Below, piece after piece: positions 3,937 through 43,738 of a DNA stretch of 64,000 nucleotides. The notes beneath the pieces are model-generated. The model did no database searches, had not been told where the DNA came from, and saw only the letters and a program-made list of their open reading frames with translations. A program made the translations under genes and the position numbers. Position 1 is the first letter of the stretch. Each line of letters opens with the position of its first letter. This stretch comes from Sphyrna mokarran (lineage: Eukaryota): contig JAGIQG010000004.1 of NCBI GenBank assembly GCA_024679065.1, positions 54,684,001-54,748,000 on the forward strand, in the 5' to 3' direction.

Positions 3937-3988
3937 ATGACGAAAATGTTTTTTCTGTGCCTGATCCTCCAAGGGATTAATCACACAG
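3937..3988 (+). CDS. Gene A exon 1, signal peptide MTKMFFLCLILQGINHT
   Basis: ATG plus hydrophobic stretch, phase-1 donor G|gtagc, and a 160-bp intron before the V exon. Confidence 0.75.
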
Positions 3989-6455
3989 GTAGCAATTTAT
4001 TCATTTCCCAATTACTTTAATCGATAACTAGCTCCGAAGTAGTTTCTATGTCAATTTAGCGAACCTCATTTCCTCTATCTAGTTTATGTTTTGAACTTTT
4101 ATGTTGTATCCTATTCAATTGACGTGTGTTCGTCTACATTTCTGACAGCTGCGGACCACACTTCGTTCAGCGTGTCTCAAGCGCCAGTAGAAACGTCTAT
4201 ATCCAGAGGAGGAAACATCACCTTCTACTGCATATTCCCCATTTTTCCATCCCAGTCCTGGGTACGGGTATTATGGTGGAAACATGGTGAGAATGAATTC
4301 CTGCATTCAAACCCAGACAAGAGAAAAATGGTTGGTATGGAAAATAAAGTCAGCGGTTTCATTCGCTTAATAAATGTGACATTTCAAGACTCTGGAATCT
4401 ATCACTGTACGGTGATCTGTCAGGGAGTAGGTCAACGAAATGGAACAGGATCACATCTAATTGTGCATGGTAAATGTCAAATATACTTGTCAAATATACA
4501 TAGCATCTTTTGACTGTTACACCGATCCATTTTTATTAGTGTTAACATGATTAGTAATACAAGCAGTATTGTTCTCTCTATATAATTGTTATTTGGCCAT
4601 GCAATGTCAGACGCAGAGTACTGCGAAATGATTCAATATTATTGAATTTGACAACAACTATGAAGGCAACTTATGCGCCAACTGAATGATCCTGGAAACC
4701 CATAGCGGTTTCCAAACATATAACAAAATGAAAATCATTTATAATAAAGGCATCATCCAATCAGTTGATCTTGCTCATTTGAGACACGCACCATCCTGAA
4801 CATCATTTATGTTAAAATTCATCTCCCAGTAAGTACACCATTCTTGTTAACTTCAAATTCTTTTTCTGCCTCTATCACTGTCCTGGCGGCTTAGTATTCC
4901 TGAAATCCTGAGATTTCGACGAGGTTCGTATACAATAGGTAAAAATTTAAAAAGTCAGGAGGCCGCGTTTTTGAATTGTACTATTATAAGAAAATGAAAC
5001 GAATGTATATCAGAACTTAATTTATCCAAATCGAGCACATTACTTGACTTTGTTCACTCTGTGTTCCGCAGCGGCCCCAATACTATTGAATCTTATCTCC
5101 AGGGCGTCTGAAGGGAATTTATCTGCGGCTTTGACTCTAGTCTGTGAAACGGCAGCGTTTTACCCGGAAAATTTCACGCTGACTTGGTATAAAAACGGAG
5201 CTGAAACTACACTTGGAATACACACCAGTAAAGTGCAAAACAGAGAGGGGTTATATGAAGTTTCCAGCTCTTTTGTTGAAACGCAGCCTGTCCCGAGCGA
5301 CGCCAATTATACACGCTTGGTATCTCATGTCTCCCTCGAGACTCCGGCAGTTGTCACCTACGTTCGCTCTAAATCTAGCCAAGGTACGATGACAGGACTC
5401 CAAAAAGGGATTAAACAATTATTGAATTCGTAAAGGGATATAATGGACAGTTTGCGCATAAAGATACTCATGGCGATAATTCACGACATTTCATTGGAAA
5501 TATTAATGAAAATATTAGATTTATTTGAATCATATATTTCAATCTAATGTTATAACATCGGTTACACACATGTTGTCTGTTATGCCTTACTATTAATAAT
5601 TTCCACTATTGTATGTACAACATATACTAGAACATATAAGATCGAAATCGGAGTTCATCATAGGGCCCGTTCGAATCTGAGTGGCCATTCAATAAAATAA
5701 TTACTGACTTTCTACATAAACTGTACTTTCCAGTCCGATCCCCTAACGATTGCAACCTTATATATACTCAGTGACTCAACATTCATAACTTTCTGAGGTA
5801 CAGAATTCCTAAGATTTGAAACTCTTGAATGAATGAATGAAGAATTCTGTCCTAATCGCAGCCTGAGATGATAAAACCCTTACCTTATGACTTTGATCCG
5901 AAGTTTTAGACTTCCAGCCAGAGATAGTAGTTTGCTGACTTAATTTATGGAAAGAAATGATTTTTTTCCCGTTCTGTATTATAGTTCCTGGGAACACTAT
6001 TAGTTTAACGAATGAACTGTTCGTCAGCAAACTTCTAAAACACTCACCACTATGTGTAACATATGTTTATGTTCTTATTAATTTTGCAGATTATGCCGGT
6101 ATGTCCCTTTACTACTCGTGTTTCAGATACGTGGTGGGTGTATTGGCGTTTGCACTACTCCTGATCATCATTAGGGCGCACTGCCAAATACCGATTAAGA
6201 ATGGTAAAGTCTAATGTAAGCGTTTGATTTTAATACAATCGTCAGATGCCGAGCGTCGAGAGAGTGAGAATCTACATGGAGAGAGGATTTTATTGAAGTC
6301 TGAACTTCAGTCCAGAGCAAGCCACTGATTGCCCCAAGTAGTGACAAATTCTTCATTCAAAACATGGTAATTATTGCAATACCATGCCACAAATGGATCT
6401 GATTAATTGTATATCTGTCACTGACATTTTTCACTTTGCAGCAACTGCTGAATGA
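3937..6455 (+). CDS. Gene A: VJ-C1-TM IgSF receptor, predicted activating (NKp30/SIRP-beta-like architecture), 270 aa
   Basis: Manual splice model with GT-AG introns, all phase 1: leader 3937-3988, V 4149-4469, C1 5072-5383, TM 6090-6203, last exon 6442-6455 (ATAE*). Total 813 nt in one open frame. The last exon is the least certain part. Confidence 0.8.
4149..4469 (+). CDS. Gene A exon 2, V-set Ig domain with J-like end
   Basis: SVSQAP..ITFYC..WWK..QDSGIYHC..NGTGSHLIV; acceptor tctgacag, donor G|gtaaat. Confidence 0.93.
5072..5383 (+). CDS. Gene A exon 3, C1-set Ig domain (second Cys replaced by Arg)
   Basis: LVCETAAFYPENFTLTWYKNG..GLYEVSSS..YTRLVSHVSL; acceptor ttccgcag, donor G|gtacga; 312 bp as in both paralogs. 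Confidence 0.92.
5625..5960 (-). mobile_element. Old CR1 3' fragment in gene A intron 3
   Basis: agaacatataaga tail and degenerate ORF2 end (cagaattcc..agatt, aagaattct.tcct); approximate. Confidence 0.5.
6090..6203 (+). CDS. Gene A exon 4, transmembrane segment containing Arg
   Basis: DYAGMSLYYSCFRYVVGVLAFALLLIIIRAHCQIPIKN; acceptor ttaattttgcag (same as the gene B TM exon acceptor), donor G|gtaaag. Confidence 0.85.
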
Positions 6456-7689
6456 AATATGTCGTTTCGCATAGTTTCCAACTAGTCTGCAGTGAGACCG
6501 CAGTTAGTTTGCATGGAGCCTTGTATCGTTCAGACCTGAAATGGTTGCAGGTCACTGCTGTCGTGCACAGGACTTGGCACTTCGAATACTGTCGAGAAAT
6601 CTATTTTGGAAAAACACGTTCTACTTTGGTACCTTCTCGCGTAAGGAGTTTGCAAAAATTGACAATTGAACTAAGTGAGTATTTAAAAAAAAAACTCCTC
6701 ATGACTGAATTTCAGTCGTTCACCTGGCAAAAGCCTAAGGAACATAGCAGCTGCACGTTCATTTGCGCATCTTCGGAAAGGCTTGAAATGAGAAAATAAA
6801 GGTCGCATAATGATCAATTTATTTATTGTTGGAAGCATTTGTCTGGCAAGAAATACTTAACACCACGAGCTCGAGAATGAAACTGCTTTTGCGAAAATAA
6901 AATCAGGCGTGGCGTTGTTAGTTCGCTCTTGTCCCTGTTGCAATATCGCGGAAGACCAATTTGTTCCAGCCATCCAGTGTTTACTGTTCTAAATAGATAC
7001 GGAGCAGAAAACAAAACTAATGGTTTTGTTAAAATTTAAAGCTGTAATCATTTTTATAATTTTATCTATATTTGGGAAAAAAAGCTAGCAAATCTGTATT
7101 CAAGCAAAGCAGGAAGTTTAACGATTTCAGTAACTTGGTGTGGCGAGCGCTTTGACATTTAAAATTTAAATTCTAATTTTAAAATTTAACTATAATTACT
7201 ATTCGCAATAGCCGGTATTCAGATTTGCAGTTATTTGAAATTATTCAGCATGGCTTCTGTGCTTTATCTCCAGCCATTCTGCTTAATGTTTCACCAGTAG
7301 AATGTAAAATGATTCAGGAAAGTGAAAGAGACATTAAAATATTTTTCCGTTCCATGTAAGAAACACAGGTTGAAATCGCCAATATGTTGCAGCACATTTA
7401 AGTAGAGCCTTTTACATTCCAAAACTTATAATTGAATTGGAGAGACCCGTGCACCCTCAGGCGGTGCTGAGATCAGACCGACAGCCATTATCACAGGACT
7501 ATATGTTACCACAATATTCCCGTGATAATGAATAATACATACAGGGTTGGCTGTTTTCTGCCGTGTATTGCAGCTCGGTTCTGTGCATTTTTTAATTCCT
7601 CATGAATACTTTGTGTAGAAGCCAATAAAACTGGAAAGAACACCAATTAATAATCTCCCCAAACATTAATTTTTCAGACCAAACAAGTT

Positions 7690-8360
7690 AACATCATGTA
7701 TAAGGTCAATAAAATAAATTTTATTAGACCTTGCTTATTTCAATCAAGCATTATTAATTTCCGTGCGTAAAATTGCAAAACCTGGTTTTTGATCTGCGTG
7801 TTTTGTATTCTGACGCCTAGAGTTGATGATTCTTTTGAAATGGACTCTACAATATATTGATTGGCCCACAGACGCATCAGAACACAGGGGCCTTCGCGGT
7901 TTAGAACGTTCAAACTCCAAAAGAGAAAAATGAAGAAGATTAAATGTAACAACTGAAAAAGAGTAACGTGTGACATTATTTTGTAACTGAGTATAAAGTA
8001 TAAGAGTTTGCTATTGTTTAACGATTCGTGGAAATTTATTTGCTTTTGCTTAACGATTTGTGGAAATTTACTTGAATTGCATGTGATAGTTATTTGATTG
8101 CCTTGATTGCCTTGTATAGTTCGACGAATCGGTGCCATTTAATGAATCAACACGCTGACTATTGAGTTATCATGTATAAAGTCAATAAAATATATGTTAT
8201 TAGAACTTGCTTATTTTAAATATTTTTAATTTTCATGCTAACATTTGCGAAATCTGGTTTTTGATCTGTGGAGTCCTATTTTGACGTTTAGAGTTGATGA
8301 TTGTTTTGAATTGGAGTCTGCAATTTATTTGCTGACGCACAAAAACCTTAGAACACAGTT
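7690..8360 (+). repeat. Diverged local direct duplication (~200-bp units at ~7690-7888 and ~8168-8358)
   Basis: atcatgtataa.gtcaataaaata.at.ttattaga.cttgcttattt..ctggtttttgatctg..agagttgatgatt..agaacacag is present in both units. Confidence 0.8.
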
Positions 8361-8877
8361 TGCATCTGATAAGATAGGAGGTGCATTTCTCTTAGTTCCC
8401 TGTGACTATCATTCCCATTCGATATCATATGTCCAGAAAATTACAGGTCACTGGCAAATGACTGACTTTAATTGTGTTTACTGGGGGTTGTCTTTAGAAC
8501 GAAAACAACCTTAAGAGCTTCTACGTCTAGCAATAATAATGAGTCGGCGTATAGTGTTGAGTATAGGTACGAACAATAATCGTGCAGAGTTGAAAACCCT
8601 TTTCTTATTGGAGATTAAGTCCTATTTAAGTGTGGCTATGTTAGCAGCAGATGACAGAATGCTCGTAATTATCGTGTTTAAATGATAAATTATTTAGGAA
8701 GTAAATTAGTTAGCAAGTATCTCACTTAAATTAGAGTTAGAACATTGCACAGTTAGTTAATAGAAGAAATGCAGACCACCGTTTCTGATGATATAAGCGT
8801 AACTTAGTACAACACAGAGTGAATGGGTGTTGTTCTCAATGTGTTTGTTTGACAATTGTTTGCGGTTAACACACATT

Positions 8878-11800
8878 AGAACAAAGAACACAGAGCAAAA
8901 CAGCGCGGGAAACAGGCCCTTCGGCCCAATGAGCCGGCACTGCCACCTCGATGTTCGCACTTCTACTCATGATCTCTGTCTATGTTTATAGATCTATGCA
9001 TTGGAACCAAATTTGAGAGACAATTTAGGGAGAATTTGTTTTGCCAATCAGCCTAAGAGCACATCTTTGGGGTGTGGCAGGAAACTGGAGCACCCAGAGA
9101 AAACCCACGCAACCACGGGGAGAATGCACAAACTCCCGCAGATACAGGACCAAATCCATGTATCTGCACAGCACAGTGACAGTCAGTGAGCTGTCGTGTT
9201 GCCCATCAATTGGTCAGTTCAAGCGTGACACTAAACTACTCTCAAAAAATCCAAGAGCAGCCTTCTCATGACCCATGGCGTATGTGCCCCTTGTTAGACA
9301 AGGTGGACCGAAGTACCTGTAGGATAAAACAGAAATACATCTATATCATTGACAATTTACACACTTCCCAGGGAACTCCCAAGGCTCGTGATCCCTATTT
9401 TAAATCAATTTTCTATATCCCTCCATTCCCATTCTGTTCATGTGCCCATCTAAGTATCCCTTAAATAACTCCAGAATGCCTGCCTCCACCACTTTATTTG
9501 GCAGTGCATTCCATACCCCCACCACCTTTGTGTGAAAAAACTCCCTCTAGCATCCAAATTATACCTTACCCCCCTCACCCTAAGCCCGTGACCCCTCGTG
9601 ATATTTGAGTCCATCCTAGGAAAAAGCTTAACCCTGTTTACCCTATCTATACCCCTCAATCCTGTACACCTTTATTAGATCTCCTCTAAGTCTACATATT
9701 TCTAAGGAAAACAGCACCAATTTGCCTAACTTCTCCTCGTAATTTAGACCTTCCATACCAGGCAGCATCCTGGTAAACCTCCTCTGCACTCTCTCCAGAG
9801 TCTTCACGTTCTTCCGGTAGTAGGGTGACCAGAACTGGATGCAGTATTCCAAATGAGGTCTAACCAATGTTCTATACAACTGCAACATTAAATGCCAGCT
9901 CTTGTACTCTATTACCCTTCTTATAAAGGCTAGCATACCATATGCTTTCTTCACAACCTTCTCCACCTGCTCTGCCACCTTCAGAGACTTGTGCACCTGC
10001 ACTCCCAGATCCCTCTGCGTTTCTATACTCTTAATAGGTCTACCCTTTATCATATACCTCCCTCTACATTCTCTCCTGAAATGCATCACCTCACATTTGT
10101 CAGGATTGAATTCCATTTGCCATCTATCTGCCCAAGCTACCAGCCTATGTCCTGCTGTATCGCCTGACAATGCTCTGCACTATCCGCAAGTCCAGCCATC
10201 TTTGTATCGTCTGCAAACTTGCTGATCACTCCACTTATTCCCTCTTCCAAGTCATTTATATATATTACAAATACAAGAGGTCACAGTACCGAGCCCTGCA
10301 GCATACCACTAGTGACCGACCTCCAGCTAGAAAAACACCCTTCCACTAATACTCTCTGTCTCCTATTACCAAGCCAGTTACTTATCCATCTAGCTACCTG
10401 TCCTTGTATTCCATTAGTCTTGACCTTTTCAACTAACCTTCCATGAGGGACTTTGTCAAACGCCTTACTGAAATCCACGTAGACAACATCAACAGCTCGC
10501 CCGTGGACTGTTTTTGTCACCTCCTCAAAAAATTCTAACAGATTTGTAAGACACAACCTCCCCTTAACAAAGCCATGCTGCGTATCCCTAATCAGATCAC
10601 AATGCTCTAAGTGCCTCGCCCCAACAGCTTCCCTACCACTTCTGTCAAACTCACCGGCCTATAGTTTCCAGGGTTTTCCCTACTACCCTTTTCAAACAAC
10701 GGTACAACATTAGCTGTTCTCCAGTGCTCTGGGACCTCACCTGTGTCCAAAGAAGAGACAAAGATTTGTGTCAGAGGTCTAGCAATTTCACCTCGCACCT
10801 CCCTAAGCAGCCTGGGATAAATGCCATCAAGCCTGGGAGAATTGTCGGTTGTAATGCTATCTAGAATCTCTAACACTTCCTCCCTCGGTATGGCTATTTC
10901 CCTCAACTGGTCTACGGCTCCCTCAGAGACAGGGCAGGTCAACAAGCTCCTCTCCTTCGTGAATACTGAGACAAAGTATTCATTCAGGATCTCTCCCATT
11001 CCCTTGGGTTCTAAACACAGTTTCCCTCCTCTGTCCCTAAGAATTCCGATTTTTCTCTAACCACCCTTTTATTCCTAACATTGGGTTAAGGAAAATCCAA
11101 AGGCTTTTTACTCCTATCTGCCAAAATCACTTCATGCCCCCTTTTTGCCCTTTTAACTCCCTGTTTGAGCTCCCTCCTACTCTCTCTAGTCCCTCCTACT
11201 CTCCCTCCAGTGCTGTCTCTGTTCCCAGTTGCTTTGACCTAACATACGCCTCTCTTTTCTTCCTAACCAACCCTCAATATCTCGAGTAATCCATGGCTCT
11301 CTAATTCTACTTTTCCCATCCTTCCCTTTAGCCAGCACATATGTTTCTTGCAACACTTTCAGTATTCCCTTGAAAGAATCCCACATGCCTAACTTGGACT
11401 TACCCTCGAACAACCATTCCCAATCAGTTTCCATAAATCCCTGCCTAATCCGATTGTAGTTAGTCTTCCCCCAATTCAGCACCTTTCCACTAGGGCAACA
11501 AGCATTCTTTTCCATTTGTATCCTAAAGTAGACAGAATTGTGGTCATTATTAGCCACATATTCTCCTACTACAGCCTCCACCTCCTGACCTGGCTCATTA
11601 CTCACAACTAAATCCAATATAGCCCCTTCTCTAGTCAGACTAGCTACATACTGCTGCAATGATCCTTCTCGTACACATTTTACAAATTTCTCACCGTACG
11701 AGCAGCCATCTCTAGGTACCTTCCAATTTACCCCAGGGAGATTAAAATCTCCCACTATAACAACTCTGTTCTTTCTGCACCTATCCAAAATGTCTTTACA

Positions 11801-13470
11801 TATACCTTCTTCAACTACCCGCAGGCTGTTGGGTGGCCTATAATATATCCTTAGCATTATAATTGCCCCTTTCCTGTTCCTCAACTCCACCCACAGCGAC
11901 TTCATTCCTAACTCCTCTATATTGTCCTCCCTCTGCACTGCGGTGATGCTCTCCCTAACTAACAACACCACTCCCTCACCTCTTCTCACCCTTCCTCTGC
12001 CAGGTCTGAAACATTTGTACCCAGGAATATTCAGCTGCCAGTGCTCCCCTTCCTTTAACCATATCTCCATCACTGCAACCATATCTAAGTTCCTTGCAAA
12101 CATTAAGGCCCTAAGTTCATCTATTTTTCCTGTTATGCTCCTCGCATTGAAACAGACATACTCCAGACCTCCAAGCCCACTCAGAACCTTCTTCTCCCTG
12201 GTTTATTTCCTCTCATCCAAGCTTACTCAATCTCCCATCTCACTCCCTACTGAGCTATCTTCTTATCCCCTCCGCCCCTCCATATTAGTTTAAACCCTGC
12301 CAAAACACTCCAGCTCACCTCCCAACTAAGATATTCATGCCCTTCCCATTTAAGTGTTCCCCATCCCTTCTATTAAGTGCCCTTCATTCACAAATAATTC
12401 CCAGTTATCCACTGGAAAACCCTCTGCTGTACACCAATCCTTCAGCCATCCATTCAGCTGTAAGATCTCATTTCCTCGGCCCCACTGTTACCTGGCCCTG
12501 GTAGCAGCTCTGAGATCACCACCCTGGAGGCCTTGCTCTTCAGCCTACCTCCCAACTCCCTAAACTGCCTTCATATATCCTCCCTGCTCTTCCTTCTTAC
12601 ATCTTTCTCTCCTATGTAAATAATTACATCTGCCTGCGTCCCCTCACCCTTCAAAATTCCCTCTACCGTGTCAGAGGTATCTTGCACCCCTGCAAGGGAG
12701 GCAAACTACCGTCCTGGAGTCCCACCTTTGACTACAGAACCCCCTATCTATTCCTTTAACGCTCCCACCCCCCACTACTATCTCCCTTCTAGCCCCCTTC
12801 CTCCCCTCTGAGGTACTCCGGTCCTCTTGCCTTACCTTTTTTACCCCTCCACCCTCGATATTTTGGGGGACTGCCACTGGGAAGTCTTTGGACTATTGCC
12901 CCTTTTCTTTTTCCCCTTCCTTACAGTAACCCACCTGTAAGGGTCAGGTTCCCTCCCTTAAGCTCTGGGTTCACCACCTTACTATGCCTCCCTTTCAGTA
13001 CTCTCCCTGACTAAAGATGCATCTTCCAATCGCCACTCTAATTGCTGGACCTGAGCCCTCAGACAATGCAGCTCCAAACATTTGACGTATATGTGGATTT
13101 TCGGGAGACAGCTTGCCTCCAGGAACTCCCACATATGACACTATATGCAGGTGAGGCATCTTTCCGTTATCCCTGCCATTGTCCTGAACACCTTTGGAGG
13201 TATGAACGCAATTAGAAAACCAGTAGCACCTTGCCTAAGCGTGCTCTCACCAAGCGAGCCAAAGCCCTCAAATCTCTCTCTGTGCTCTCTGCTCACTCCG
13301 CTGTCTACTGCTGCTTTCTTTTCATACTCTCCGGTTCCCTTCCCAGCTACCCCCACGCCTAACTACGGCAGCAAAAAACAATTAAAAAACCCACTAACCG
13401 GAAATAGAGAAAGAAAAGCAAATTAAAAAATTTTCGTGCTCACCACAACCACCAGCACTTCCAAACACTC
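8878..13470 (-). mobile_element. Near full-length decayed CR1 LINE, family A (ORF1, APE-RT ORF2, long 3' UTR)
   Basis: Minus-strand ORF pieces: endonuclease (YYRPP, GDFN, SNDH-like), RT (DFSKAFDKVPH, QGSVL, HLEYCIQFWSP), ORF1 fragments; (TGTTCTT)n tail. The 5' end is approximate. Confidence 0.92.
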
Positions 13471-14454: not shown

Positions 14455-15650
14455 CAGAAGGAAGCCATTAGGCGTCCCGAGTCTCCACGAACTACAGTCC
14501 CAATCAGGCTGTATTCCCGTAACCCCACATATTTACCCCGCTAATTTCCATGACACTAGAGTCAATTTAACAAAGAATAAAACAGCATGGGAAACAGGCC
14601 CTTTGGCCCAACGAGCCCGCGCCACCACCCCGATGTTCCCATCTCTACCCGTGATCCCTATCTATGTTTGTAGATCTATGGATTAAAAACCAAATTTCAG
14701 ACAATCTAGGGAGAATTTGTTTTGCCAATTTGCCTAAGAGCACATCTTTGGGATGTGGGAGGAAACCGGAGCACCCGGAGGAAACCCACGCAAGCACTGG
14801 GAGAATGCGCAAACTCCATGTATCTGCACAGCACAGCGATAGTCACTGAGCTGTCGTGTTGCCCATCAAATGGTCCAGGTCAAGCGTCCACTAACGACGT
14901 GGAGCACTAGGATACTTTCAAAAAATCCAAGAGCAGCCCTCCCACGACCCATCGCATGTATGCCCCTTGTTAGACAATAGAGTGGACCAAAGCACCTGTA
15001 GGATAAAAACAAGTACATCAATATCATCATCTATTTACACCCTTCCCAGAGACTTACAATTCTGTTCATGTGCCCATCTAAGTATTTCTTAAATAACTCC
15101 AGAATACGTGCCTCCACCACTTTACTTGGCAGCGCATTCCATACCCCCACCACCCTCTATGTGAAAAAACTCCCTCTCGCATCCAAATTATATCTTAACC
15201 TCCTCACGCTAAGCCCGTGACCCCTCGTGCTATTCGAGTCCATCCTAGAAAAAAGCTTAACCCTATTTACTCTATCTACACCCCTCATAATCTTGTACAC
15301 CTCTATTAGATCTCCTCTAAGTCTACGTCTTCCTAAGGAAAACAGTCCCAATTTGCCTAACCTCTCTTCGTAACTCAGACCTTCCATACCAGGCAGCATC
15401 CTGGTAAACCTCCTCTGCACTCTCTCTCCAGAGTCTCCACGTCCTTCCGGTAGTAGGGCGACCAGAACTGGACGCAGTATTCCACTTAACCAGCACGTTT
15501 TTGGAATGTAGGAGGAAAGGGGAGCATGTGGAGGTAACACACGGGGGGAACGTGCAAACTCCCCACAGTTATCCGAGGCCGGAATTGAACCAGGGTCTCT
15601 GGCGCGGTGACGCAGCAGTGCTTACCACGATGCCACCGTACCGCCCACAG
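14455..15650 (-). mobile_element. HE1-like V-SINE split by a CR1 family A 3' fragment (14569-15484)
   Basis: SINE head and V-domain at 15485-15650, SINE 3' part at 14455-14568. The insert carries the ORF2 end (ERVQRRFTRMLPG) and the family A UTR. Confidence 0.8.
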
Positions 15651-16784: not shown

Positions 16785-17415
16785 TAGGGTCTTTAAGGGT
16801 CTCTTGGACAGCCACATGAGCGGTCTGCAGATAGAGGGATATAGCAGGACTGCCTAAATATCTTATTAATATTAATATTAATTTATTTTATATTATTTAA
16901 TTTAAATAATAATTCAATTTAAAAAAATATTAACATTAAAATATTAATTCCACAGGCAATTCGGTCCACCTTGGACCAACAAGGTGCATGCATTCGGCAG
17001 GTCGTGCGAGGGCTGCTCTTGGTTGTTGCTTCAGGAGTGGCCTAGTCCTTCAAGTCGTTAGTGTATGCTTAAACTGGTCCATCTGATGGGCAACATGACA
17101 ACTCAGAGACTATCGCTGTTGCTGTGCAGACACATAGATTTGGGCCTGTGTCTGCGGGAGTTTGCGCGTTCTCCCCGTGGTTGCGTGGGTGTTCTCCGGG
17201 TGCTCCGGTTTCCTCCTACATCCTAAAAATGTGCTCTTAGGCTGATTGTGTAACAAATTGTTCTTATACTGGTCCCTATATGGGAGTCTTCCACAATAGG
17301 CAGAGCCTAAAGTCATGGATATGTCATTAAGACGTTAGGACGGCGGCGCGGGCTCGTTGGGCCGAAGGGCCTGTTTCCCGTGCTGTGTTGCTCTTTATTC
17401 TTTGTTTGTTCTTTG
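16785..17415 (+). mobile_element. CR1 family B 3' end with structured UTR and V-domain
   Basis: ORF2 end LDSHMSGLQIEGY, AT-rich tract at 16858-16948, UTR matching 19541-19975, gggccgaagggcctg terminal hairpin. Confidence 0.85.
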
Positions 17416-23704: not shown

Positions 23705-23765
23705 ATGTTGTCTAATCTGATCGTCCTGTTAACGTCCATGTCTTCTCTGAAGATCATTTCAACAG
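23705..23765 (+). CDS. Gene B exon 1, signal peptide MLSNLIVLLTSMSSLKIIST
   Basis: ATG, hydrophobic core, phase-1 donor G|gtattg, 190-bp intron. Confidence 0.75.
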
Positions 23766-26700: not shown

Positions 26701-29700
26701 TTATATATCATGCTTATTATTAAACACTCGCACTTGGCCATTTCTCATCCTGATTTATATTTTCCATTATCAGAGTTCCTCACACGAGCTACAGAACCAG
26801 AAGTAACAGTTTGTTTGGTGCGCCCAACTGTGAAGGGGTCAGAAGTTAGTACTCTGTGCAGGCAGCAATGCCTCTCCATGATCTAGTGGTTAGGAGTGAA
26901 AACGCTGATTTATAATATTTCATTTCGCTTGCAGCCCAGATCTGCAGTATAACTGACTGCGATTCATCTGTTTATTAATTAGTAAGTTCACTTATTAACA
27001 AATAATCTCCCTCCTTACTGCTTCTTAATTCAGACAATTCAAAAGATTGAATTTGCATATTAAGAGACTCAATATTGTCTATATTTCTCTTAGTGACGAG
27101 TTTCGTTTTATTGAATTACTAACGTTTAATTAAATAAGAAAAATAAAGTCAATTGCAAGAACAAGTCTATTGATCCATCGAAATGTACTCGAAGGGAATT
27201 GTAACTCTAAAATACGAAGTTTAGAGTGTCCCAAACTGGTACTCCTGCTCGCAAGTCATTCTGGTGTTGTGAAAAGAAATTAATTCGACATCAATCCAGT
27301 ATAGTAAATTTCGAATACTTTGAAATAAAGTTTTAACGTTTATTTATTAATCACAAGTAAGGCTTACATTAATACAGCAATGAAGTTACAGTGAAACTCG
27401 CCTAGTCGTCACAGTCCGGCGCCTGTTCGGTTCAATACACCTAACCAGCACGTCTTTCAGGCTGTGGGACGAAACCGGAGCACCCGAGGAAACCCACGCA
27501 GACATGGGAAGAACGTGCAAACTGCACACAGACAGTGACCCAAGTCTGAAATCGAACCCGGGTCCCTGGCGCTGTAAAGCTGCAGCGCTACCGCGCCGCC
27601 TCCATGATCTGCTCTGGACTTGTCACCCAGTTGCAGAAAACATGAGCACTAGTTTAACCAACAAATTAGATAAAAGCAAACTACTGGATGCTGGAATCTG
27701 AAACAAAAACGGCAAATGGTGGGAAACCTCAGCCGGTCTGACAGCATCTATGGTGAGAGAATATTAATTCGAGATTTCTTTTTAGGTAGCGACCGAAATG
27801 AACTGGAACTCAACATGATTTTAATTTTGCAGAGTCTGATGACAAATATTACATTTGGATTTCTGGATGTACGGCTGGTGGATTGGTTTTTCTGATATTC
27901 ATGTTCATAATTGGGAAGACGGTCTGTCTGAAGAAGGCAGGTAGGTGCTACATTACGCATTCGATTTTAATGCAAATCTTCATGAACGGAAAGATCATGC
28001 TTGGCGCCACTGTAAGCACAAGGATTACGCAATTGTCACTTACTGGATGCAAGAGAAATCGTGAGCGTCAATTGTGGGTGATTTTATAACATAGTAATTG
28101 TCTCAAAATTAGAATTTAATTAACCTGATTACTTGTACATTATATTCGTAAAGTTACATTCTGGCAGATGGTAAATCAGATGGAGAATGTTTACAATTCA
28201 CTTAAAAATGTGAAAATCTGGCATCAGCAGAATTCAATTAATCTGAAGAGTGGCAAAAAATGCCAAGTAACTGATTAATGTCCTTTAGAGACGGAGACAG
28301 ATTCAATGCGGTCTGACCTATATGTGACTCCAGTCCGACAGAAGTATGCTTAGTTTTTTAATAACTTCTGAGGTGGTCACGCAAGTCATTTAGTTGTACC
28401 TAGTTAATAACAGCCAGAGGGGGACACTAAGGATGCCTGTCTGCGGCACCGACGTCTTGAGAATGAAGTAAGATCGCAGTTTGACATTTTCTACACGTTA
28501 AATATTCTTACATTTTTCCATAAACAATAAGATCGAGCCGTCGCTTTGCAGGCTAAAGGATCAAATTTATCCCGGCTACGACAATGAATAATCACTCGGT
28601 GTCTCTATTAACGAACGCTTGGGTTTTATTATTAATTACCAAAACTGTGTTCCGTTATGCCATGGTCTAGAGCACCCCAGAGATCGACCGTTCGCACGTG
28701 TGCCGTGGTCTCTTTTCCATGTAGTTTCACATCCAGTATTAAACCATTGTTAATCTGCATTAAATGGACATTTTATGTGCCCTGCCAACTAAGTACTTGG
28801 TCGCTCTCAGTTTCACCCTTACCAATGTTCATAGAATCCAGGGATTCTTTTTTCCAGTCCGCTGTAGCCTGCGTCCGTGTGTGTTTCTGAGCGTGTTACT
28901 ATGAGTGTCTGTATTTGTGTAATTATGTGCATGCGTGTTTCTCCAAGTGTGTGTTAAAACTTTATGTAGCCCCTAAAAACACTTTTGGAGGCACAAATAT
29001 GGAAAGTGATGAGGGATCGTAAGCATTGAAAGAAATTAATCGGTTTATTTTCCAGGTAAACAAGAACGTGCGGCAATAGTGAACACTGGTGACGAGCTGG
29101 TGGGTTGATTTTTATATAAATGTTGTTATAATGAAGATAATTCATCACGGTCTATTTAACTATCGGCATTTATCTCTAATTGATGCTTTATTGATATCGT
29201 GTTTTGAAAATCATTTGATGATTACTAGGATGCTGTTGAAAGTTGTTAAAGGAAGAAATAAATGAAGGGGAAAATGAGGGCAATACAGTAGTTAGCACTG
29301 TTGCCTCATAGCTCCAGGAACCGAGTTCATCCCCAGCCTTAGGCAATTACCTACATGGAGTTTGCACGTTCTCTTCGTGCCTGCTTAGTTTCCTCCCACG
29401 GTCCAAAAATATGCAGATTAGGTAGGTCGGTCACGCTACCTTGCCCCTTAGTGTCCAAAGGTATGCAGTTTAGGTGGATTGACTTTGCTAAATTGCCACT
29501 TAATGTCAAAAGGTATGTAAATTTCATGGATTAGCCATGACAAATGTGTGGATTAAGGGGTAGGGTGGGGGAGAAACGGAGTCAGATACTCAGAGAGTTT
29601 TGGTGCACATTTTTCTGCACTGTATGGATTCTGTGAATTTGATAGTTTCATTAACATACAGTGCTGTAATCGTCATATGTCTGACCATCTAAAGGTTGTT

Positions 29701-30351
29701 TTTTGGGAGCTAAGATTGCCGTTTAAAATGCTGAAATTGTATCTTGTCTAAACGCATCAGTAAGCGAAAATCAGCAGGATGAAATGTAACCAAAGGAGAA
29801 AATGCTGGAAAATCTCAGCAGATCTAGCAGCATCTGTAAGTAGAGAAAAGAGTTGACAATTCAAGTCCAGACAATCCGTTGTCAAAGCTCTGGACTAGAA
29901 ACATCAGCTCTTTTCTCTCTTTACTGATGTTGCCAGACCTGCTAAAGTTTTCCAGCATTTCCTCTTCCAGTTTCAGATTACGCAGTAATTTGCTTTCATA
30001 GGATGAAATGCAAGTTCCAATTGACACTTTATTTACCGACACATCTTTAAATATAGTCACGATCAGTTCTTCATTTAATACGTAGGCCATATCCCATTTA
30101 TATTCAGTGTTTAATCAAGAATTTTTATTCCGGTGGCCCCCATTAACTTACCAAATAACGAAACGATTTCGTTTTGTCACACGCAGACAGCTCAGCACAA
30201 CGTTGTGACATATGCTGCAATGGATTTGAATAAATCCACTAAAACTCCAAGACGTAAAGCTGAAGAGGAGATGACAGCGTACGCTGAGGTGCGTCTGAGA
30301 AGTAGAGAAGGGACAGTATCGAACACCTGCGAAATGCTAACAGTAATGTAA
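23705..30351 (+). CDS. Gene B: VJ-C1-TM IgSF receptor with ITIM-like + ITSM tail, predicted inhibitory, 336 aa
   Basis: Exons 23705-23765, 23956-24276, 26099-26410, 27833-27940, 29056-29099 (44 bp, phase 1 to 0), 30187-30351. Total 1011 nt in one open frame with GT-AG introns. Confidence 0.85.
23956..24276 (+). CDS. Gene B exon 2, V-set Ig domain with J-like end
   Basis: SVSQSP..ITFYC..WWK..QDSGIYHC..NGTGSNLVV; acceptor tttctaacag, donor G|gtaagt. Confidence 0.94.
24721..25947 (-). mobile_element. CR1 family A 3' fragment in gene B intron 2 (V-C1)
   Basis: ORFs 25257-25517 and 25504-25945 give the ORF2 C-terminus; family A UTR and tail present; ends ~150 bp before the C1 acceptor. Confidence 0.92.
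26099..26410 (+). CDS. Gene B exon 3, canonical C1-set Ig domain
   Basis: FVCQTAGFYPGDLTLLWYKNG..GLYEVSSS..YMCLVTHISL; both canonical Cys present; donor G|gtatga. Confidence 0.94.
27325..27600 (-). mobile_element. V-SINE (same subfamily as 1630-1945) in gene B intron 3
   Basis: gaaaccggagcacccgaggaaacccacgcagac V-domain and tcgaacccggg B box on the reverse strand. Confidence 0.8.
27833..27940 (+). CDS. Gene B exon 4, transmembrane segment (uncharged)
   Basis: ESDDKYYIWISGCTAGGLVFLIFMFIIGKTVCLKKA; acceptor ttaattttgcag, donor G|gtaggt. Confidence 0.87.
28160..28480 (+). mobile_element. SacSINE1/DeuSINE-like relic
   Basis: taatgtcctttag..ggtctgacctatatgtgactccag core, recognised from memory of the family; similar to 44580-44750 and 47440-47580. 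Confidence 0.55.
29056..29099 (+). CDS. Gene B exon 5, 44-bp cytoplasmic spacer (GKQERAAIVNTGDEL)
   Basis: Acceptor ttattttccag, donor gtgggt. Same length and phases (1 to 0) as the gene C spacer exon, and it restores frame to the ITIM exon. Confidence 0.7.
29278..29635 (+). mobile_element. HE1-type V-SINE
   Basis: gttagcactgttgcctca head, ggagtttgcacgttctc V-domain, internal tandem ttgccccttagtgtcc repeats. Confidence 0.8.
29798..29996. repeat. Palindromic ~200-bp element (long inverted arms), probably Penelope-derived
   Basis: gaaaatgctggaaaatctcagcagatctagcagcatc..agagaaaagagttgac is mirrored by atcagctcttttctct..gatgttgccagacctgctaaagttttccagcattt. Confidence 0.75.
30187..30351 (+). CDS. 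Gene B exon 6, tyrosine-motif exon (VTYAAM, TAYAEV)
   Basis: Acceptor ttgtcacacgcag, phase 0; two Tyr motifs 23 aa apart; stop TAA at 30349-30351. Confidence 0.85.
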   Translation, partial: TAQHNVVTYAAMDLNKSTKTPRRKAEEEMTAYAEVRLRSREGTVSNTCEMLTVM

Positions 30352-37486: not shown

Positions 37487-37535
37487 ATGGCATCGAGTGT
37501 TGTGCTTCGCAGCACAATCTGGATTACCTTGATTG
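37487..37535 (+). CDS. Gene C exon 1, signal peptide MASSVVLRSTIWITLI
   Basis: Good Kozak context aaaATGg, phase-1 donor G|gtattt, 93-bp intron. Confidence 0.75.
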
Positions 37536-40500
37536 GTATTTATTATAGTTCACTCCTTGTCTTTACGTCTGTGTCTCGCTCTCGCTCTTTTTTTTATAAC
37601 TAAAACGAGTGTTCATTTTCTTTCATAGTTGCTGCCAATCCTCTGATTGAAGTGACTCAATCCCCTGAAAATATCAATTCGATAATCGGGACTAATGTTG
37701 CATTCGACTGCACGTTTCCTACTTCTCATAGTTTAGATGTGAACTTTCATTGGTGGAAACTAGGCGAAAAGGATTTGATGCGACCAGGATCAGATAGCAG
37801 GAAATGGTTTGCCACTGGGAATGGGAGAGCCTCCTTTCAACTTCTGAATATCAGTATTCAGGACTCTGGAGTCTATTACTGCGGAGTGACACTTCAGGGA
37901 AACTGGGTCACAAATGGAAGTGGATCAACCCTCGTCGTTCGTGGTAAGAGAAGTGTTAAGATGCTAGGCTTGCTCAGTTTCAAAGTTATTCAAATAATTA
38001 ATAAAGATTAACATCCCTTCAGCCTTCTCCTGATCGATTCTTAAATAGTTACATTGGAAATTAATTGCTCCGATAGAAAGATTCTGGGCATGAAATAAAG
38101 GTGCTCTTTTCACCTTCTTACTTACTTCAGTAATAATTATCTCTGTCCTTTCATGTGTTCAAACTTGCACAGGAAATGTTTTCAGATCATTCAAGAGCGA
38201 ATGGAGATTATGAAACAACTTGAAGTAATTTCGATATAAATAATATTTTTCATAATTTAAAATAGTGCTTATTAAGAAAAAAATGTTAGAAGGTCTTTTT
38301 ATTGAGTTCAATTACAATCAGAACACGGATCATATTCTTTCTGCGTTAAAACTAATGTCTCTACAGGGCACTGGCGTTTCCAACAGTTTTGTAAGCGTAT
38401 TACTGTTTTAATGTATGAACCTGGCAGCGGATCTGCATACAATAATATTTCATAACCAGAGAAGAGAAATTGCCAAATAATTACTGGCAGTGTTTCGGGG
38501 ACTAATTACTAGCCAAGGGGACAATGTCAATATATTTCTCTGAGTAGTGCTGGAGGCTATGTAGAGTTTATCTCTCCAAAGCACTACATATTTAAATACT
38601 TCCTCCGTACTATACTAAATTGTTTGCACTAATTAAATTTTCAAATGCGGGGAGTACAACATGGATCTCACGACTTTATCGGAGTTAATGTTGCTGCATT
38701 TGACCAATGGAATTCACAATGCGCTCCAAATATGAAGCCAAGCTCCCAGATGTTTAGCTATCATTTCAGTTCGTTATTCGGCCGCTTTGGTCACTTCCTG
38801 ATTGACTCACACAATAAGCTGAATCTTCTCAAGTCTCTTCAAAAACGAATATGCCGCCGATGTAGAATTTGATGAAACTATTCCTGAGTTGTTCAAACTC
38901 TACTCGTCGCAGTAATTAATCTTCAGATACATCTGGCACGTTGAAGTAAGCAGCGAAATGAGCGCCTTGCCTTTTGTTCAATCCCCGGTTGGGGTTTTGT
39001 TCATTCCTTACGAACTCACGATAGAACTATATCACCTCCGTTTAGCTATCGAATTATAGTCAGCAATAGGATGGCTTGTGAGCGTGGGATCTCAATTCCT
39101 CCGCTCATTATAAGTAGCGATATAGTCTGAGGGCCTTCTGGAAGTTTCATCAGGTTGCTAATTGAGAGCAAATAAACTTTTCACAAAGGCATTTCCATTC
39201 AGTATAAGAGCAACCCCAAATATTTCATTCGTGTTCCGAGTTCTCTTATCTATGCAGGCAAACAGAAAAATGTAATTTCGAAAATTTACGTAGAGAACGA
39301 TACATTTGCGCTCAGTTCAAAAGATCTGGAATGCTTGTTACAAGCAGATTCAGTAGAAATTTAAAAGGAAATTTGATATGCATTTGAAGTAGAATGTTTG
39401 CTGCGCTGAGGTAAGAGTCAAGGCGTGAAATTAATTGCTTATTTCTTGCATAACCACCGCAGATTCAATAAGCCGACTGACATTCTTTATACTTTATGAT
39501 GCAATTATCTACAATAATTATAGAACGATTTTTTAATTCCGCTAGTAATAAACAGATTGATAACTCTTTGAGCTGTTTTAGTTCAAATACAATAAAAGTG
39601 AATGCCACTCTGCGGAATATACGGTCTATATAACTTCAATTTTCGATCTTTCCCGAGCTCTTCCAACTCCCGTGAAGATTCTTCCCCGCGCACCTGCAAG
39701 CAATGTACCCTATTCTTTGATGCTGGTGTGCGAAATGGCTTCATTTTACCCTGCGGATCTAACTATCACTTGGTACAAAAATAATGAAAGCATTGAGAAT
39801 GGAATTCACACTATCAAACAACTCAGCAAAACTGGAATGTTTGAAGCTTCCAGCTACTTTGAAGAGGCACAACCTATCCAGGGAGGGACTGTTTATGCCC
39901 GCCTAGTTTCTCATGCAACTCTCCAGATTCCGGCCATGGCAACTTACATAGTTCCCAATTGTAAACCAGGTATGAAATCAATTTTCTTGGAAAAAATGAC
40001 AATGCAATAAAATCTAACGTTATTGAAAGTGAACGGGTTGTAAACTTCAACGCAGTGATAACTGCATTGATAAAATGCAAAATATATTTGTAAAATTAGG
40101 TAATTATTTGAAGTATAGAAATGTATTTTTTTTCACTGCCTTTGCTTTTCCATTTTCAACTCCACGGAATAGTGACAACTTCTTAAATAGAAGAAACTTC
40201 CACCTTTGATGGGGAATGAAAAGGCGGTCTCCATTGGACCGTGTTATATATATCGCCAGATTTTACTTCCAATTTATTATATAACCTAATTTGAATATTC
40301 GCGCAATGCAATTGCATCTCGACAGCTTAGTAAATACTGAAACCCAGAAAATGTTGTTTTCGCAAAATTCATTTCTCTCACCTATTCAATTTCATTCATC
40401 AATATTGTAAATTTATTCACACTGCGTTCATTATCTTCCAATTTTCCATTTCAGCTTAGATAATTAGTGCTCCCCATTGTAATCACGAGTGGATTTCTTT

Positions 40501-43500
40501 AATCCAGCACAGGCCTGAGACGTGTATTGGAGTTCTTCACCCTGAAGTGGCAAATGGGAATGAATCATTGACAGCTTTGGGGCAAATGTATACCTGAGCG
40601 TTTTTGTGTTCGCGATTCGAAATGGAATGGAAAACGTGTACAAACCATAATTCTTTCTGCCTGTTATCAAATACTTGTTGCACATCCATAACTTTCTTGA
40701 AATAATACTAGCCAGGTAGTTTGGAATTTAAAAATCTGTGTTGGGACAGTGGGTAAAATTTTTCACTCGCATTTTGTGGAGAAATAAACATGTCTTGACA
40801 CACTAGCAAAGTAAACCTTAACATCGAGAAGTCACTCCACATAATGCCAAGGGGAATTAACACTTGAATTAATTAGCTTAATGAAACAAAAATTTTAATA
40901 TTTTACTGCATCAGTAGTAACTGACTGTGAAAAAATAACGGGACGAAGTATCTGTGAGGCGAGAATTAAAATAATTCCCCCTTCCGCCTGCCATGGGAAA
41001 CGGAGCGGGCGAGGGACTGACCATGGAAAGGTGCTTTGACCTCATACGAGATTTTCCGGTTGCGGGGCGAGCGCGGACGGAACATCTGGCCCTCTGTAGT
41101 TCGTCTTCAGCAACAGCACAAATTGGGCGATAGCGAGTCAGTAGCGGTATTTACATCTCTCCTGATTGCCATTTGACTTTCCACAAGTTAAATGAAGCGA
41201 TGCATCACTTCCCAACCCGAACACGCATCGCTTAGTTTTAAATAGTGGGAAATGAATTTTCACCAAAGCACACGCTGATTCCACACATTAGACTGATGGA
41301 ACAATTCTTCGAAATCAGAAGCTCTCTGGAGTTGTTATCTTGCAGTTACAAAGTTATGTCAATCTTTCAGGTCGTGACAGAGCCTCGTCCTCTTATTTAC
41401 GAATCTTTGGGTGCGTATGTTTCGCATTTATGTTTTTGTTGCCGGTGATCTTCATTAGAAAGTTGTTCACATTCGGCAACCATAAAGGTAAGATATCGCA
41501 TTAGGACGTAATAAAATTATAAATCAGAAATAACAGGAAGCAACCAATGAGCAGCAAAAGATGATTGATCCAAGTTTGAGCCCAATTATCTGTTGGTGCT
41601 GGAAGAATTCAATTGGTCGTTGGATTTTGAAATTGGTTTGTGATATTGATTATAGTATTTATTTTAAGTTGGCATGAGTTTAACGATAGATTGTGTTTTC
41701 AGAACGCAATCTCCCAACACACCCCAATCCGAAAACTCTGCATCTATGAGGTTAAACATACTACGGGAATAATATATCCAAAATTGTTTTGCCCATCATG
41801 TAGCAGATATTTCATTTTTTTTAACTGCAGTGAAGAGTTTTGAATTAGTATTCGCTCTTAAATATCCCATGGCGTAAACACAATTTGTAGAGTTTAATGA
41901 TGCTTTTTTTTCTTATCCTCACTGTAAATTGATAATTTTGTGCATTATTGACAATGGCGTTTTGAACTTTGTGTTTTAGTAACCAGACAGAGAAAAGACA
42001 AAGCAAACAGGAATGGCAAATCTGTAAGTTAATAATACTCATTTGACTGATGTTTTAAATATAATGTGCAAATTTTGTGTCGAGCCAAGAGCATCTGACA
42101 TTTGATACTGTTATCCACTAAGATTTAGCTGGCTCTACTGGAAGTAAAACATTGCAGTGTTTACTAATTCCCGTTTTCTTTGTGCTTCATGTCAATGTGG
42201 TTAGTGTCAAACAAAATGCCAGTTTTACATTTGCACTCCACAGTTCGGGCACTCAAAATTATTTTAGGCAACATCCTTGAGTAGATATAGCATCAGCATA
42301 TTGAAGTTTCAGCGTGTTCCTGGCTATCAAATTCGAGCTTTTGTACGGACGTTCACCCGAAACTACGTCACTTGGATGGAATTTGCAATGTTTCGTCTAT
42401 TGCAACAATGACAATCAATCCTTCGAAGGGATTCATCGGTTCTTCATTTCGACGAGCTGTGGTAGTGAAATATACTTAGTAAAGAATGTTATCATTTAGC
42501 ATATAATTACTGCTTGAAAATATTACTCATCGCTTGGAGATAGGTTGAAGTTAATTGGACTTTATTAATAGTTAAATCACTAGGTTGATCACTTTCGCGG
42601 ACGTTTTAGCTTTGATGTTCAACTAGACACACTAGGGATCTTTTAATGTAAAAACATGAAGAGCTGATTGAAAAATTGGAATTTTGAAGCATCTTGCGCC
42701 AATCAGTGGGGAAATTTATTTCCACTGACAATGATTAGGTTACCAGAGGATATAATTTAACATCATCACCAGAAGAACAGAGGTAGGAGAATCTTTCTCA
42801 ATCAGAGAGCAGTTAGAGATTGGAATTCCACATGAGAACAACACAACGCATAATCCATACAAGAATTTACAAAAAGTGGCGATAGCAATTTTAAAAACAA
42901 AATAAACAACTTGGTATGGGGAGAAAATACAAGTGTATGGGGCTAAATTTAAAAAAAAATGCCCTAATGACAGTTACAAGGACAACACGTAACTTGTGAA
43001 ATACTGAATGCAATGGACATTCCTATAGCGTATCATTCGCAAGTTTGTAATCATTGTTAAGCTAAAGTAACAATCACTGTGAATTTGGGGGACAAACACA
43101 TTTGAGGAGACAAGATATCATTTGAAAGAATCATAGAATGCCTAGTGCAAAAGGGCGTTATTCCTCATCGAACCTGCACTATAGGTTCCCACACAGGCCC
43201 TATCCAAGCAACCCTATGTATTTTTCCTCCTAATTCCCCCTGACACCATGGAGCAATTTAGAGTGGCCAATCCACCTAATCTGCATATCTTTAGACTGTG
43301 GAAGGAAATCGGAGCACCTGAAGGAAGCCCGCCCAGACGGGGGAGAACACGCCAACACCAGCACAGACAGTGACCCAAGTCGGGAATCGAACGCCGGTCC
43401 TTGGCGCTATGATGAGGCAATGCTTACCACTGTGCCATCATGCGGCCCCCAGCATTTGCCTAATTTACTTTGGTGACCCAATATATAAGTTCGTTAAGCC

Positions 43501-43738
43501 AAGGGTAACTCAAATATTATGATGAAATCACTCGGTTTTATTATGTATTCTGTGGCTAAATGAGATTAAGATCTAACTTTACAAAACATCTCTTTTATAG
43601 ATCTTACAAGACTCATCTGATAAACAGCTGACTTACGCAGAAGTCGAACTAATTAGTTCTCAGAAAAATAGAAGTCTGAGAGGCAAGGAAAAGGGCACGG
43701 AATATGCGGATATTAGGAATGTAGGACAAGAGAAATAA
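37487..43738 (+). CDS. Gene C: VJ-C1-TM IgSF receptor with ITIM + ITSM tail, predicted inhibitory, 324 aa
   Basis: Exons 37487-37535, 37629-37943, 39658-39969, 41371-41487, 41980-42023 (44 bp), 43601-43738. Total 975 nt in one open frame with GT-AG introns. Confidence 0.85.
37629..37943 (+). CDS. Gene C exon 2, V-set Ig domain with J-like end
   Basis: EVTQSP..VAFDC..WWK..QDSGVYYC..NGSGSTLVV; acceptor tctttcatag, donor G|gtaaga. Confidence 0.94.
39658..39969 (+). CDS. Gene C exon 3, C1-set Ig domain (second Cys replaced by Arg)
   Basis: LVCEMASFYPADLTITWYKNN..GMFEASSY..YARLVSHATL; 312 bp; unusual GAG acceptor; donor G|gtatga. Confidence 0.9.
40955..41092. mobile_element. Short GC-rich MITE-like insert (possibly Harbinger-derived)
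   Basis: GC-rich island in an AT-rich intron with imperfect termini ggcgagaatt..ttccgcc / gcggacggaacatctggccc. Confidence 0.4.
41371..41487 (+). CDS. Gene C exon 4, transmembrane segment
   Basis: Absent from the ORF track. Read by hand: GRDRASSSYLRIFGCVCFAFMFLLPVIFIRKLFTFGNHK; acceptor aatctttcag, donor G|gtaaga. Confidence 0.85.
41980..42023 (+). CDS. Gene C exon 5, 44-bp cytoplasmic spacer (VTRQRKDKANRNGKS)
   Basis: Acceptor tttgtgttttag, consensus donor gtaagt, phase 1 to 0. Confidence 0.78.
43128..43450 (-). mobile_element. HE1-type V-SINE in gene C intron 5
   Basis: agaatcatagaat tail, V-domain, and gggaatcgaac B box on the reverse strand. Confidence 0.8.
43601..43738 (+). CDS. Gene C exon 6, ITIM (LTYAEV) + ITSM (TEYADI)
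   Basis: Absent from the ORF track. Acceptor tctcttttatag; ILQDSSDKQLTYAEVELISSQKNRSLRGKEKGTEYADIRNVGQEK*. Confidence 0.87.
   Translation: MLQDSSDKQLTYAEVELISSQKNRSLRGKEKGTEYADIRNVGQEK

Follow-up and report, generated by a model that had tools for sequence, protein, structure and literature searches.

Three tandem VJ-C1 genes of Sphyrna mokarran as likely members of a cartilaginous-fish family of germline-joined membrane receptors with activating and inhibitory forms

In this work we analyzed a stretch of 64,000 nucleotides from the cartilaginous fish Sphyrna mokarran (GenBank assembly GCA_024679065.1, contig JAGIQG010000004.1, positions 54,684,001 to 54,748,000 of the forward strand), hereafter the window, which carries three tandem genes, A, B and C, each predicted to encode a receptor with one variable (V) domain ending in a joining (J)-like segment, one constant domain of the C1-set, and a transmembrane (TM) segment. 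The explanation that we favour, and that we consider likely, is that these genes are tandem members of a large multigene family of germline VJ-C1 type I membrane receptors of cartilaginous fish, which includes activating and inhibitory forms. The ectodomain would be formed by one germline-joined VJ unit followed by one C1-set domain, an arrangement also found in a single immunoglobulin (Ig) light chain or in a single T-cell receptor (TCR) chain. In comparative immunology, relics of the precursor of antigen receptors are being sought among non-rearranging VJ-C1 genes; the chicken genes VJC1A and VJC1B, which Fu et al. are said to have described in 2019, are reportedly tandem non-rearranging genes with VJ, C1 and TM segments, proposed to be relics of this kind. 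In passages of the recent elasmobranch literature this role is given to UrIg, UrIg2 and NCR3; the VJ-C1-TM family is much larger than that set, extends over sharks, rays and a chimaera, and is equipped with a predicted signalling module of its own, either inhibitory or activating.

The exon plan was read from the genomic sequence (Table 1), and the description of it given in a first-pass annotation of this DNA is confirmed: the three paralogs are present in tandem, in frame and with GT-AG introns. They have in common a split leader, a single-exon V, a C1 exon of 312 nt and a TM exon; genes B and C extend this plan with an exon of 44 nt followed by an exon with two tyrosine motifs, one of the immunoreceptor tyrosine-based inhibitory type (ITIM, or ITIM-like in B) and one of the immunoreceptor tyrosine-based switch type (ITSM), and both exons can be read in the sequence as had been claimed. 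GT and AG delimit every intron of the three genes, the frame is kept at all junctions, these are of phase 1 except for the one after the 44-nt exon, and the exon sums are divisible by three (269, 336 and 324 codons for A, B and C, respectively). A tblastn search of every exon against the window detected exactly three V and three C1 exons, all of them on the forward strand. For gene A, the TM Arg and a tail without tyrosine motifs are borne out, but the tail is 13 and not 14 residues long. In all the searches, alignments and trees presented here the input was single exons or database proteins.

With E-values from 6e-7 to 1.6e-10, the V exons of the three genes exceed the Pfam cut-off for V-set. 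V and J run on without a break in one germline exon, whose J-like end, located just before the splice donor, reads GTGSHLIV in A, GTGSNLVV in B and GSGSTLVV in C; the J-position Phe/Trp is replaced by Asn. Both V cysteines are kept in A and C, and the identity among the three V domains ranges from 36 to 50% (to A, 50% for B and 36% for C). The window was scanned for recombination signal sequences (RSS; heptamer-spacer-nonamer) and none was found beside any V exon; only three weak RSS-like matches were detected, near 19.2 and 28.6 kb on the reverse strand. The proposal that these are non-rearranging VJ genes, with V exons that end in GxGSxLxV, is therefore upheld. The same cannot be said of the proposal that the V domain is NKp30-like, which is without sequence support: when compared with solved structures, neither the V exon of B (best 60 of 72 matches) nor a V profile made from the three exons (best 60 of 4663) had an NKp30 chain or a SIRP V domain among those best 60 matches. 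The proteins found there are generic, and include contactin, the polymeric Ig receptor, a TCR alpha V, an amphioxus VJ-C2 protein, a shark NAR V and PD-L1.

The second exon encodes a true C1-set domain in the three genes, as had been proposed; the scores are 35.0, 41.7 and 38.8 bits (E 1.9e-8 to 1.5e-10) against a Pfam cut-off of 21 bits, and the C1 domains of B and C are 45% and 42% identical to that of A, respectively. Directly after the C1 domain there is an unpaired stalk cysteine in B (NNSCP, about 26400-26410) and in C (PNCKP, 39955-39969), as there is in two database relatives, P0170 and P0165; by speculation, it might allow B and C to form a covalent dimer. A family-wide stalk cysteine for covalent dimers was considered and rejected, given that no more than 4 of 45 other relatives had a cysteine flagged in the segment from C1 to TM, and by our reading just two of these have it in the stalk proper.

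When V and C1 are taken together, the ectodomain aligns in one stretch to the V-J-C of Ig light-chain-like segments, in agreement with the antigen-receptor-chain shape that had been assigned to these genes. A family profile generated from an alignment of 40 members covers V-J-C of the 2rcj_C segment, which reads as an Ig lambda chain (71.7 bits), and, as a close second, of a kappa-like segment in 7t62_B (69.3 bits); scores per stretch were used because chains with many Ig domains are at an advantage in whole-chain E-values. The second-best solved match of this profile is UrIg2 (E 7.6e-36), and SIRP-alpha also ranks high. Likeness was judged from rankings of solved structures because the word-index searches gave no outgroups (SIRP, NCR3, tapasin, B7H6, Ig or TCR) from which a tree could be built: the homologue P0006 as a whole (22 matches) and the C1 region of P0004 (13 matches) recovered only family members, and the V region of P0039 recovered only the query. 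The ESM Atlas neighbours of P0006 were generic V-C1 clusters (SIRP-like, NCR3 ligand 1, tapasin-related and Ig kappa-like) and did not discriminate. Judging from the sequence, to describe these proteins as shaped like one antigen-receptor chain is fair, and the terms NKp30-like V and SIRP-like are not specific.

The window genes share with Ig light chains and TCR chains the split leader with a short intron, the V that ends in a J-like G-x-G and the C1-set domain placed directly after it; in passages of the UrIg2 paper (PMC12227049) the short split leader is considered canonical for antigen-receptor genes. In contrast to those chains, V and J are in one germline exon with no RSS adjoining it, the J Phe/Trp is Asn, the chains bear their own signalling tail or a charged TM, and the genes belong to a multigene family with fixed V sequences. 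UrIg and UrIg2 are also elasmobranch genes with a single-exon VJ, a split leader and C1-type domains after it; according to passages of the same paper (PMC12227049), UrIg is secreted and contains three C domains, against nine in nurse shark UrIg2, whereas the window genes have one C1, a TM, signalling through ITIM/ITSM or a charged TM as predicted from their sequence, and a large multigene family.

Regarding the signalling modules, their motifs indicate that B and C are probably inhibitory receptors: once phosphorylated, the membrane-distal ITIM plus ITSM would bring in phosphatases of the SHP-2/SHP-1 type through their tandem SH2 domains and in this way damp activation. The consensus of these motifs, the binding of tandem SH2 domains, and the joint action of an ITIM with an ITSM are described in passages of PMC12151841, where the SHP-1/SHP-2 binding residues are also reported to be conserved in jawed vertebrates, from sharks to mammals. 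The tyrosines are 23 residues apart in both tails, and these are the only two tails with two tyrosine motifs in the six-frame translation of the window; that of B shows 62-66% identity over 29 residues to the tails of Heptranchias models. Gene A probably encodes an activating receptor in need of an adaptor with an acidic TM residue and an immunoreceptor tyrosine-based activation motif; its TM Arg would pair with such an adaptor, of the FcR-gamma, CD3-zeta or DAP12 type, and bring about activation. Receptors that pair with these adaptors are marked by a basic residue located in the outer TM third. No hidden tyrosine tail exon for gene A was found in the window, either by tblastn with the tail exons of B and C or by a six-frame motif scan. 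The TM exon of A retains at 6206, just before the stop, a GT donor that matches the onward splice point of the TM exon of B; since this ancestral donor is still present, the short tail looks like read-through after the loss of the tail exons. Farther along, an AATAAA is present at 6795-6800.

Across the family, a single TM position appears to switch between Gly, in proteins with long tyrosine tails, and Arg, in proteins with short tails. The residue is Arg in the short-tailed A, P0006, P0170 and P0015, and Gly in the long-tailed B and P0166; the activating-type motif, R-(C/Y)-x-x-G-(G/V)-L, is one base change away from the G-C-x-x-G-G-L present in many inhibitory-type proteins. P0006, a relative of A from Scyliorhinus canicula, shares the Arg-bearing TM of this gene (72% identity over 29 residues) and ends five residues after it; P0170, a relative of B from the same species, has Arg where B has Gly, and the protein ends soon after the TM. 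Other members of the A lineage (P0004, P0166, P0167 and P0168) have Gly or Val at the switch position and long ITIM/ITSM tails. In a rough census of 114 single-V proteins, 75 had a TM, and among these 41 combine a plain TM with tyrosine motifs, 12 have a basic residue in the outer TM and no motifs, three have both features and 19 neither. Both signalling types therefore occur across the family and, from one species to another, within single lineages; in the A lineage they are combined only across species. These results qualify the idea that the three genes form a paired activating/inhibitory set: opposite modules are present, together with the Gly/Arg switch, but the ectodomains are not near-identical, given the V and C1 identities mentioned above, and in the window neither B nor C has in A the near-identical partner usually implied by the term paired receptor.

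The extent of the family was assessed with the V profile, which was searched against 1.84 billion representative proteins and gave 1265 matches at E<=1e-3, of which 241 remain at E<=1e-10 and 21 at E<=1e-30. Thirty representatives were looked up among the 150 best matches and 28 of them are chondrichthyan; the other two are turtle proteins with multiple Ig domains, which match because scores add up over many Ig domains. Among the representatives looked up, the family is placed in each species on a single large chromosome or scaffold. The word-search matches are all chondrichthyan (22/22 and 13/13). Seventeen species are named among the relatives, i.e. ten sharks, six batoids and Callorhinchus milii, and a domain scan of 202 retrieved proteins found one V and one C1 in 73. 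The nearest relatives of A are P0004 from Mustelus asterias (78% identity in V and 78% in C1) and P0006 (70% in V); that of B is P0170 (75% in V, 68% in C1), and that of C is P0165 from Scyliorhinus torazame (69% in its second V, 74% in C1). In a tree of V (112 rows) A falls in a clade of 10 rows from sharks and batoids with a support of 95 in the Shimodaira-Hasegawa-like approximate likelihood-ratio test (SH-aLRT), B in a clade of 7 rows from sharks and rays (SH-aLRT 99), and C groups with P0165 and P0036 (SH-aLRT 94); the same groups were recovered in a tree of C1 (94 rows) with support of 92-93. Each of the window genes groups with genes of other species, which indicates that they represent old separate lineages and are not recent duplicates. 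P0165 is a RefSeq model of 413 aa in which an A-like V is fused with a C-like V-C1-TM; two neighbouring genes may have been mis-merged in it, or it may be a true two-V receptor, and in both cases A-like and C-like genes are probably adjacent in S. torazame.

A different assignment is that the window genes are the cartilaginous-fish orthologues or co-orthologues of SIRP, in which case B and C would be of the SIRP-alpha type, A would be of the DAP12-coupled SIRP-beta type, and one C1 would have been lost; we consider this unlikely. The two groups are alike in having a VJ-like V followed by C1-set, with inhibitory forms that bear tyrosine-motif tails and activating forms that combine a basic TM with a short tail, and the pair of ITIM-type tyrosines together with the basic-TM, short-tailed form recalls SIRP-alpha/SIRP-beta (SIRP features described in part in PMC12975943). 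SIRP-alpha-like (PTPNS1-like) and SIRP-beta-1-like are the commonest automatic names of the relatives in RefSeq, the relative P0032 has two C1 domains, and the family profile aligns in one stretch to residues 3-205 of SIRP-alpha, that is, V and the first C1 (E 1.7e-33). The best solved matches of the C1 of B are domain 2 of SIRP-alpha (E 2.7e-11) and SIRP-gamma (E 3.6e-11), and to this extent the label SIRP-like was justified, but it does not extend to the other two genes. The closest solved matches are UrIg2 and then a light-chain-like constant segment for the C1 of A, and this same segment and beta-2-microglobulin for that of C; UrIg2, the light-chain-like segment, beta-2-microglobulin and MHC class II beta rank at or above SIRP for both domains. 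It also counts against a SIRP origin that SIRP V domains are missing from the best 60 V matches, that SIRP has two C1 domains and two tyrosine pairs where the window genes have one C1 and one ITIM/ITSM pair, and that the same family has received other automatic names, namely tapasin-related-like, Ig lambda-1 light-chain-like, CD276 homolog, MHC class II beta-like, NCR3 ligand 1-like and uncharacterized. Names that conflict in this way reflect a generic V-C1 likeness.

Several observations weigh against the assignment of A, B and C to a family of working activating and inhibitory VJ-C1 receptors. The gene models are predictions from genomic DNA; in the first motif of B the +3 residue is Met, which departs from the ITIM consensus given in passages of PMC12151841; and no report of adaptor or phosphatase binding by any member of the family was found in the literature. 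Gene C combines an Arg at the TM boundary with an ITIM/ITSM tail and the relative P0036 has a Lys at this position and a short tail, from which it follows that the two signalling classes are not cleanly separate. The signalling census takes in isoforms, fragments and a few rows that do not belong to the family, and the trees were obtained by quick maximum likelihood from about 105 columns, with many forks unresolved. Finally, 40 of 40 relatives have a cysteine at the F-strand position of C1, yet this residue is Arg in A and C, and the canonical pair formed by the B-strand and F-strand cysteines is present only in B; since an otherwise invariant cysteine is replaced, the C1 domain of A and C may not fold normally. 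The F-strand codon is CGC in both A and C, despite the 42% identity of their C1 domains, and TGT in B.

The Arg at this position may denote a misfolded or unstable C1 and genes in decay, it may be a change that the domain tolerates, or the C1 exon may be skipped. With regard to the last possibility, the C1 exon has 312 nt and is in phase 1 at both ends, so skipping keeps the frame and leaves a V-only receptor. Two RefSeq models, P0074 and P0085, are identical to P0072 and P0080 apart from the missing C1 (Heterodontus francisci and Mobula birostris); these V-only models suggest that skipping of the C1 exon gives V-only, NKp30-shaped isoforms.

The first of these possibilities can be taken further, by considering A and C as decaying or non-functional genes and only B as a working one, with A as the truncated relic of an inhibitory gene. 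This would account for the Arg (CGC) found where 40 of 40 relatives have Cys and for a gene A that lost its tail exons and kept the donor of the TM exon, and it is compatible with models of A and C predicted from genomic sequence. We find this improbable: all the exons of A and C are open, with intact splice sites, and other invariant residues are kept, by eye (the first C1 Cys, the C1 Trp and the C1 His); an Arg-bearing TM with a short tail is common to A and P0006, which indicates that this form is older than S. mokarran and not a random truncation; and the frame-neutral skipping of C1 would still leave a V-only receptor.

NKp30 carries a TM Arg, as does gene A, and like the window genes, whose V has no RSS beside it, it has a non-rearranging VJ-type V; furthermore, the V-only relatives P0074 and P0085 share its layout. 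These likenesses would be explained if the window genes were members of the published shark NCR3 (NKp30) family (Kinlein et al. 2021; Flajnik et al. 2012), that is, known biology under another name, and this family is diverse, since eight nurse shark NCR3 sequences appear in passages of the UrIg2 paper (PMC12227049). We regard this reading as decidedly doubtful. As mentioned before, NKp30 is missing from the best 60 solved-structure matches of the V exon of B and of the V profile; the name NCR3 is not borne by any of the 30 representatives or the 35 word-search matches, two of which are named NCR3 ligand 1-like; and in passages of their work those who described shark NCR3 call it a "VJ single exon" and present UrIg as the novel elasmobranch VJ-C1 gene, which suggests that the published NCR3 has no C1. 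In contrast, all the window genes carry a C1 exon; the comparison with the published shark NCR3 is one of described layouts.

According to a bolder proposal, no living membrane-bound relative would be closer to the chain split by the RAG transposon than the VJ-C1-TM family, which would be a self-signalling germline receptor retained in all cartilaginous fishes as a multigene family; the V-only NKp30-type receptors would be derived from it by loss or skipping of the frame-neutral C1 exon, and A and C, with a C1 deprived of its disulfide, would be midway in this process. We hold this proposal to be very unlikely.

In relation to novelty, we found no description of a chondrichthyan VJ-C1-TM ITIM family, in a literature search that did not take in Kinlein 2021, Flajnik 2012, the 2023 UrIg paper, Ohta & Flajnik 2015, or supplements; these loci may be named in the gene lists that supplement PMC10751288 and PMC12227049. 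UrIg, UrIg2 and NCR3/NKp30 are named as the elasmobranch non-rearranging VJ genes, and NCR3 is treated as VJ-only, in passages of the 2025 UrIg2 paper (PMC12227049) and of the 2023 MHC paper, and those passages describe no VJ-C1-TM family; term searches found neither ITIM nor SIRP in the UrIg2 paper (PMC12227049), nor SIRP in the 2023 MHC paper. As for the question of novelty raised in the first-pass annotation, the description of the family may be new, but these are not unseen genes, because relatives are already present in RefSeq and UniProt under automatic names. As far as we could search, this is an undescribed family, widespread and automatically annotated, whose members are, as predicted from sequence, light-chain-shaped and self-signalling. 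If it is truly undescribed, a membrane-receptor branch would be added to the set of relic genes, and its old, trackable lineages would be suitable for studying the interconversion of activating and inhibitory receptors by means of a one-base Gly/Arg change in the TM; moreover, the SIRP-like, tapasin-like and Ig-lambda-like names present in shark annotations would be hiding one family. If, on the other hand, it is an already described offshoot of SIRP or NCR3, the present work amounts to ordinary annotation.

Table 1. Exons of the three VJ-C1 genes and copies of a short interspersed repeat, in window positions
Feature	Position	Strand	Remarks
Gene A	3937-6214	+	exon reading
Gene A, leader exon	3937-3988	+	52 nt, phase 1; ATG and GT donor read; a leader intron of 160 nt comes next
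Gene A, VJ exon	4149-4469	+	321 nt; ends in NGTGSHLIVH; Pfam V-set E 6.2e-7, above cut-off
Gene A, C1 exon	5072-5383	+	312 nt; F-strand Cys replaced by Arg (CGC, 5314-5316); Pfam C1-set E 1.9e-8
Gene A, TM exon	6090-6214	+	Arg in outer third of hydrophobic stretch; 13-residue tail; stop 6212-6214
Gene B	23705-30351	+	exon reading
Gene B, leader exon	23705-23765	+	61 nt; followed by a 190-nt leader intron
Gene B, VJ exon	23956-24276	+	321 nt; Pfam V-set E 1.6e-10
Gene B, C1 exon	26099-26410	+	312 nt; both canonical cysteines kept; Pfam C1-set E 1.5e-10
Gene B, TM exon	27833-27940	+	108 nt; Gly where activating-type relatives carry Arg (compared by eye with P0170, P0006, P0015)
Gene B, spacer exon	29056-29099	+	44 nt, cytoplasmic; phase 1 to phase 0
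Gene B, tail exon	30187-30351	+	VTYAAM (ITIM-like, Met at +3) and TAYAEV (ITSM)
Gene C	37487-43738	+	exon reading
Gene C, leader exon	37487-37535	+	49 nt; followed by a 93-nt leader intron
Gene C, VJ exon	37629-37943	+	315 nt; Pfam V-set E 2.3e-8
Gene C, C1 exon	39658-39969	+	312 nt; F-strand Cys replaced by Arg (CGC, about 39900-39902); Pfam C1-set E 1.2e-9
Gene C, TM exon	41371-41487	+	117 nt; Arg at outer boundary of hydrophobic stretch
Gene C, spacer exon	41980-42023	+	44 nt
Gene C, tail exon	43601-43738	+	LTYAEV (ITIM) and TEYADI (ITSM)
Short interspersed repeat, copies	27380-27620, 43268-43408, 1633-1777, 24897-24994, 19676-19774		
Short interspersed repeat, remaining copies	17136-17235, 14739-14818, 47822-47898, 15483-15637, 9058-9134		

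Beside the three genes, the rest of the 64-kb window is mostly retroelement debris, and there are no flanking genes in it. Pfam gave no match at E<=0.001 for an open reading frame of 184 aa located at 61768-62322 on the reverse strand. A short interspersed repeat of about 100-240 nt is present in ten copies with 70-83% identity, some of them within introns of B and C. Fragments of long interspersed nuclear elements (LINE) were detected at 9643-12103 (reverse strand), 48157-50466 and 58659-59775 (reverse strand), among others, with reading frames for an RVT_1 domain (423 aa, 49195-50466) and an endonuclease domain (11186-12103); LINE fragments occupy most of the 17 kb that separate genes A and B.

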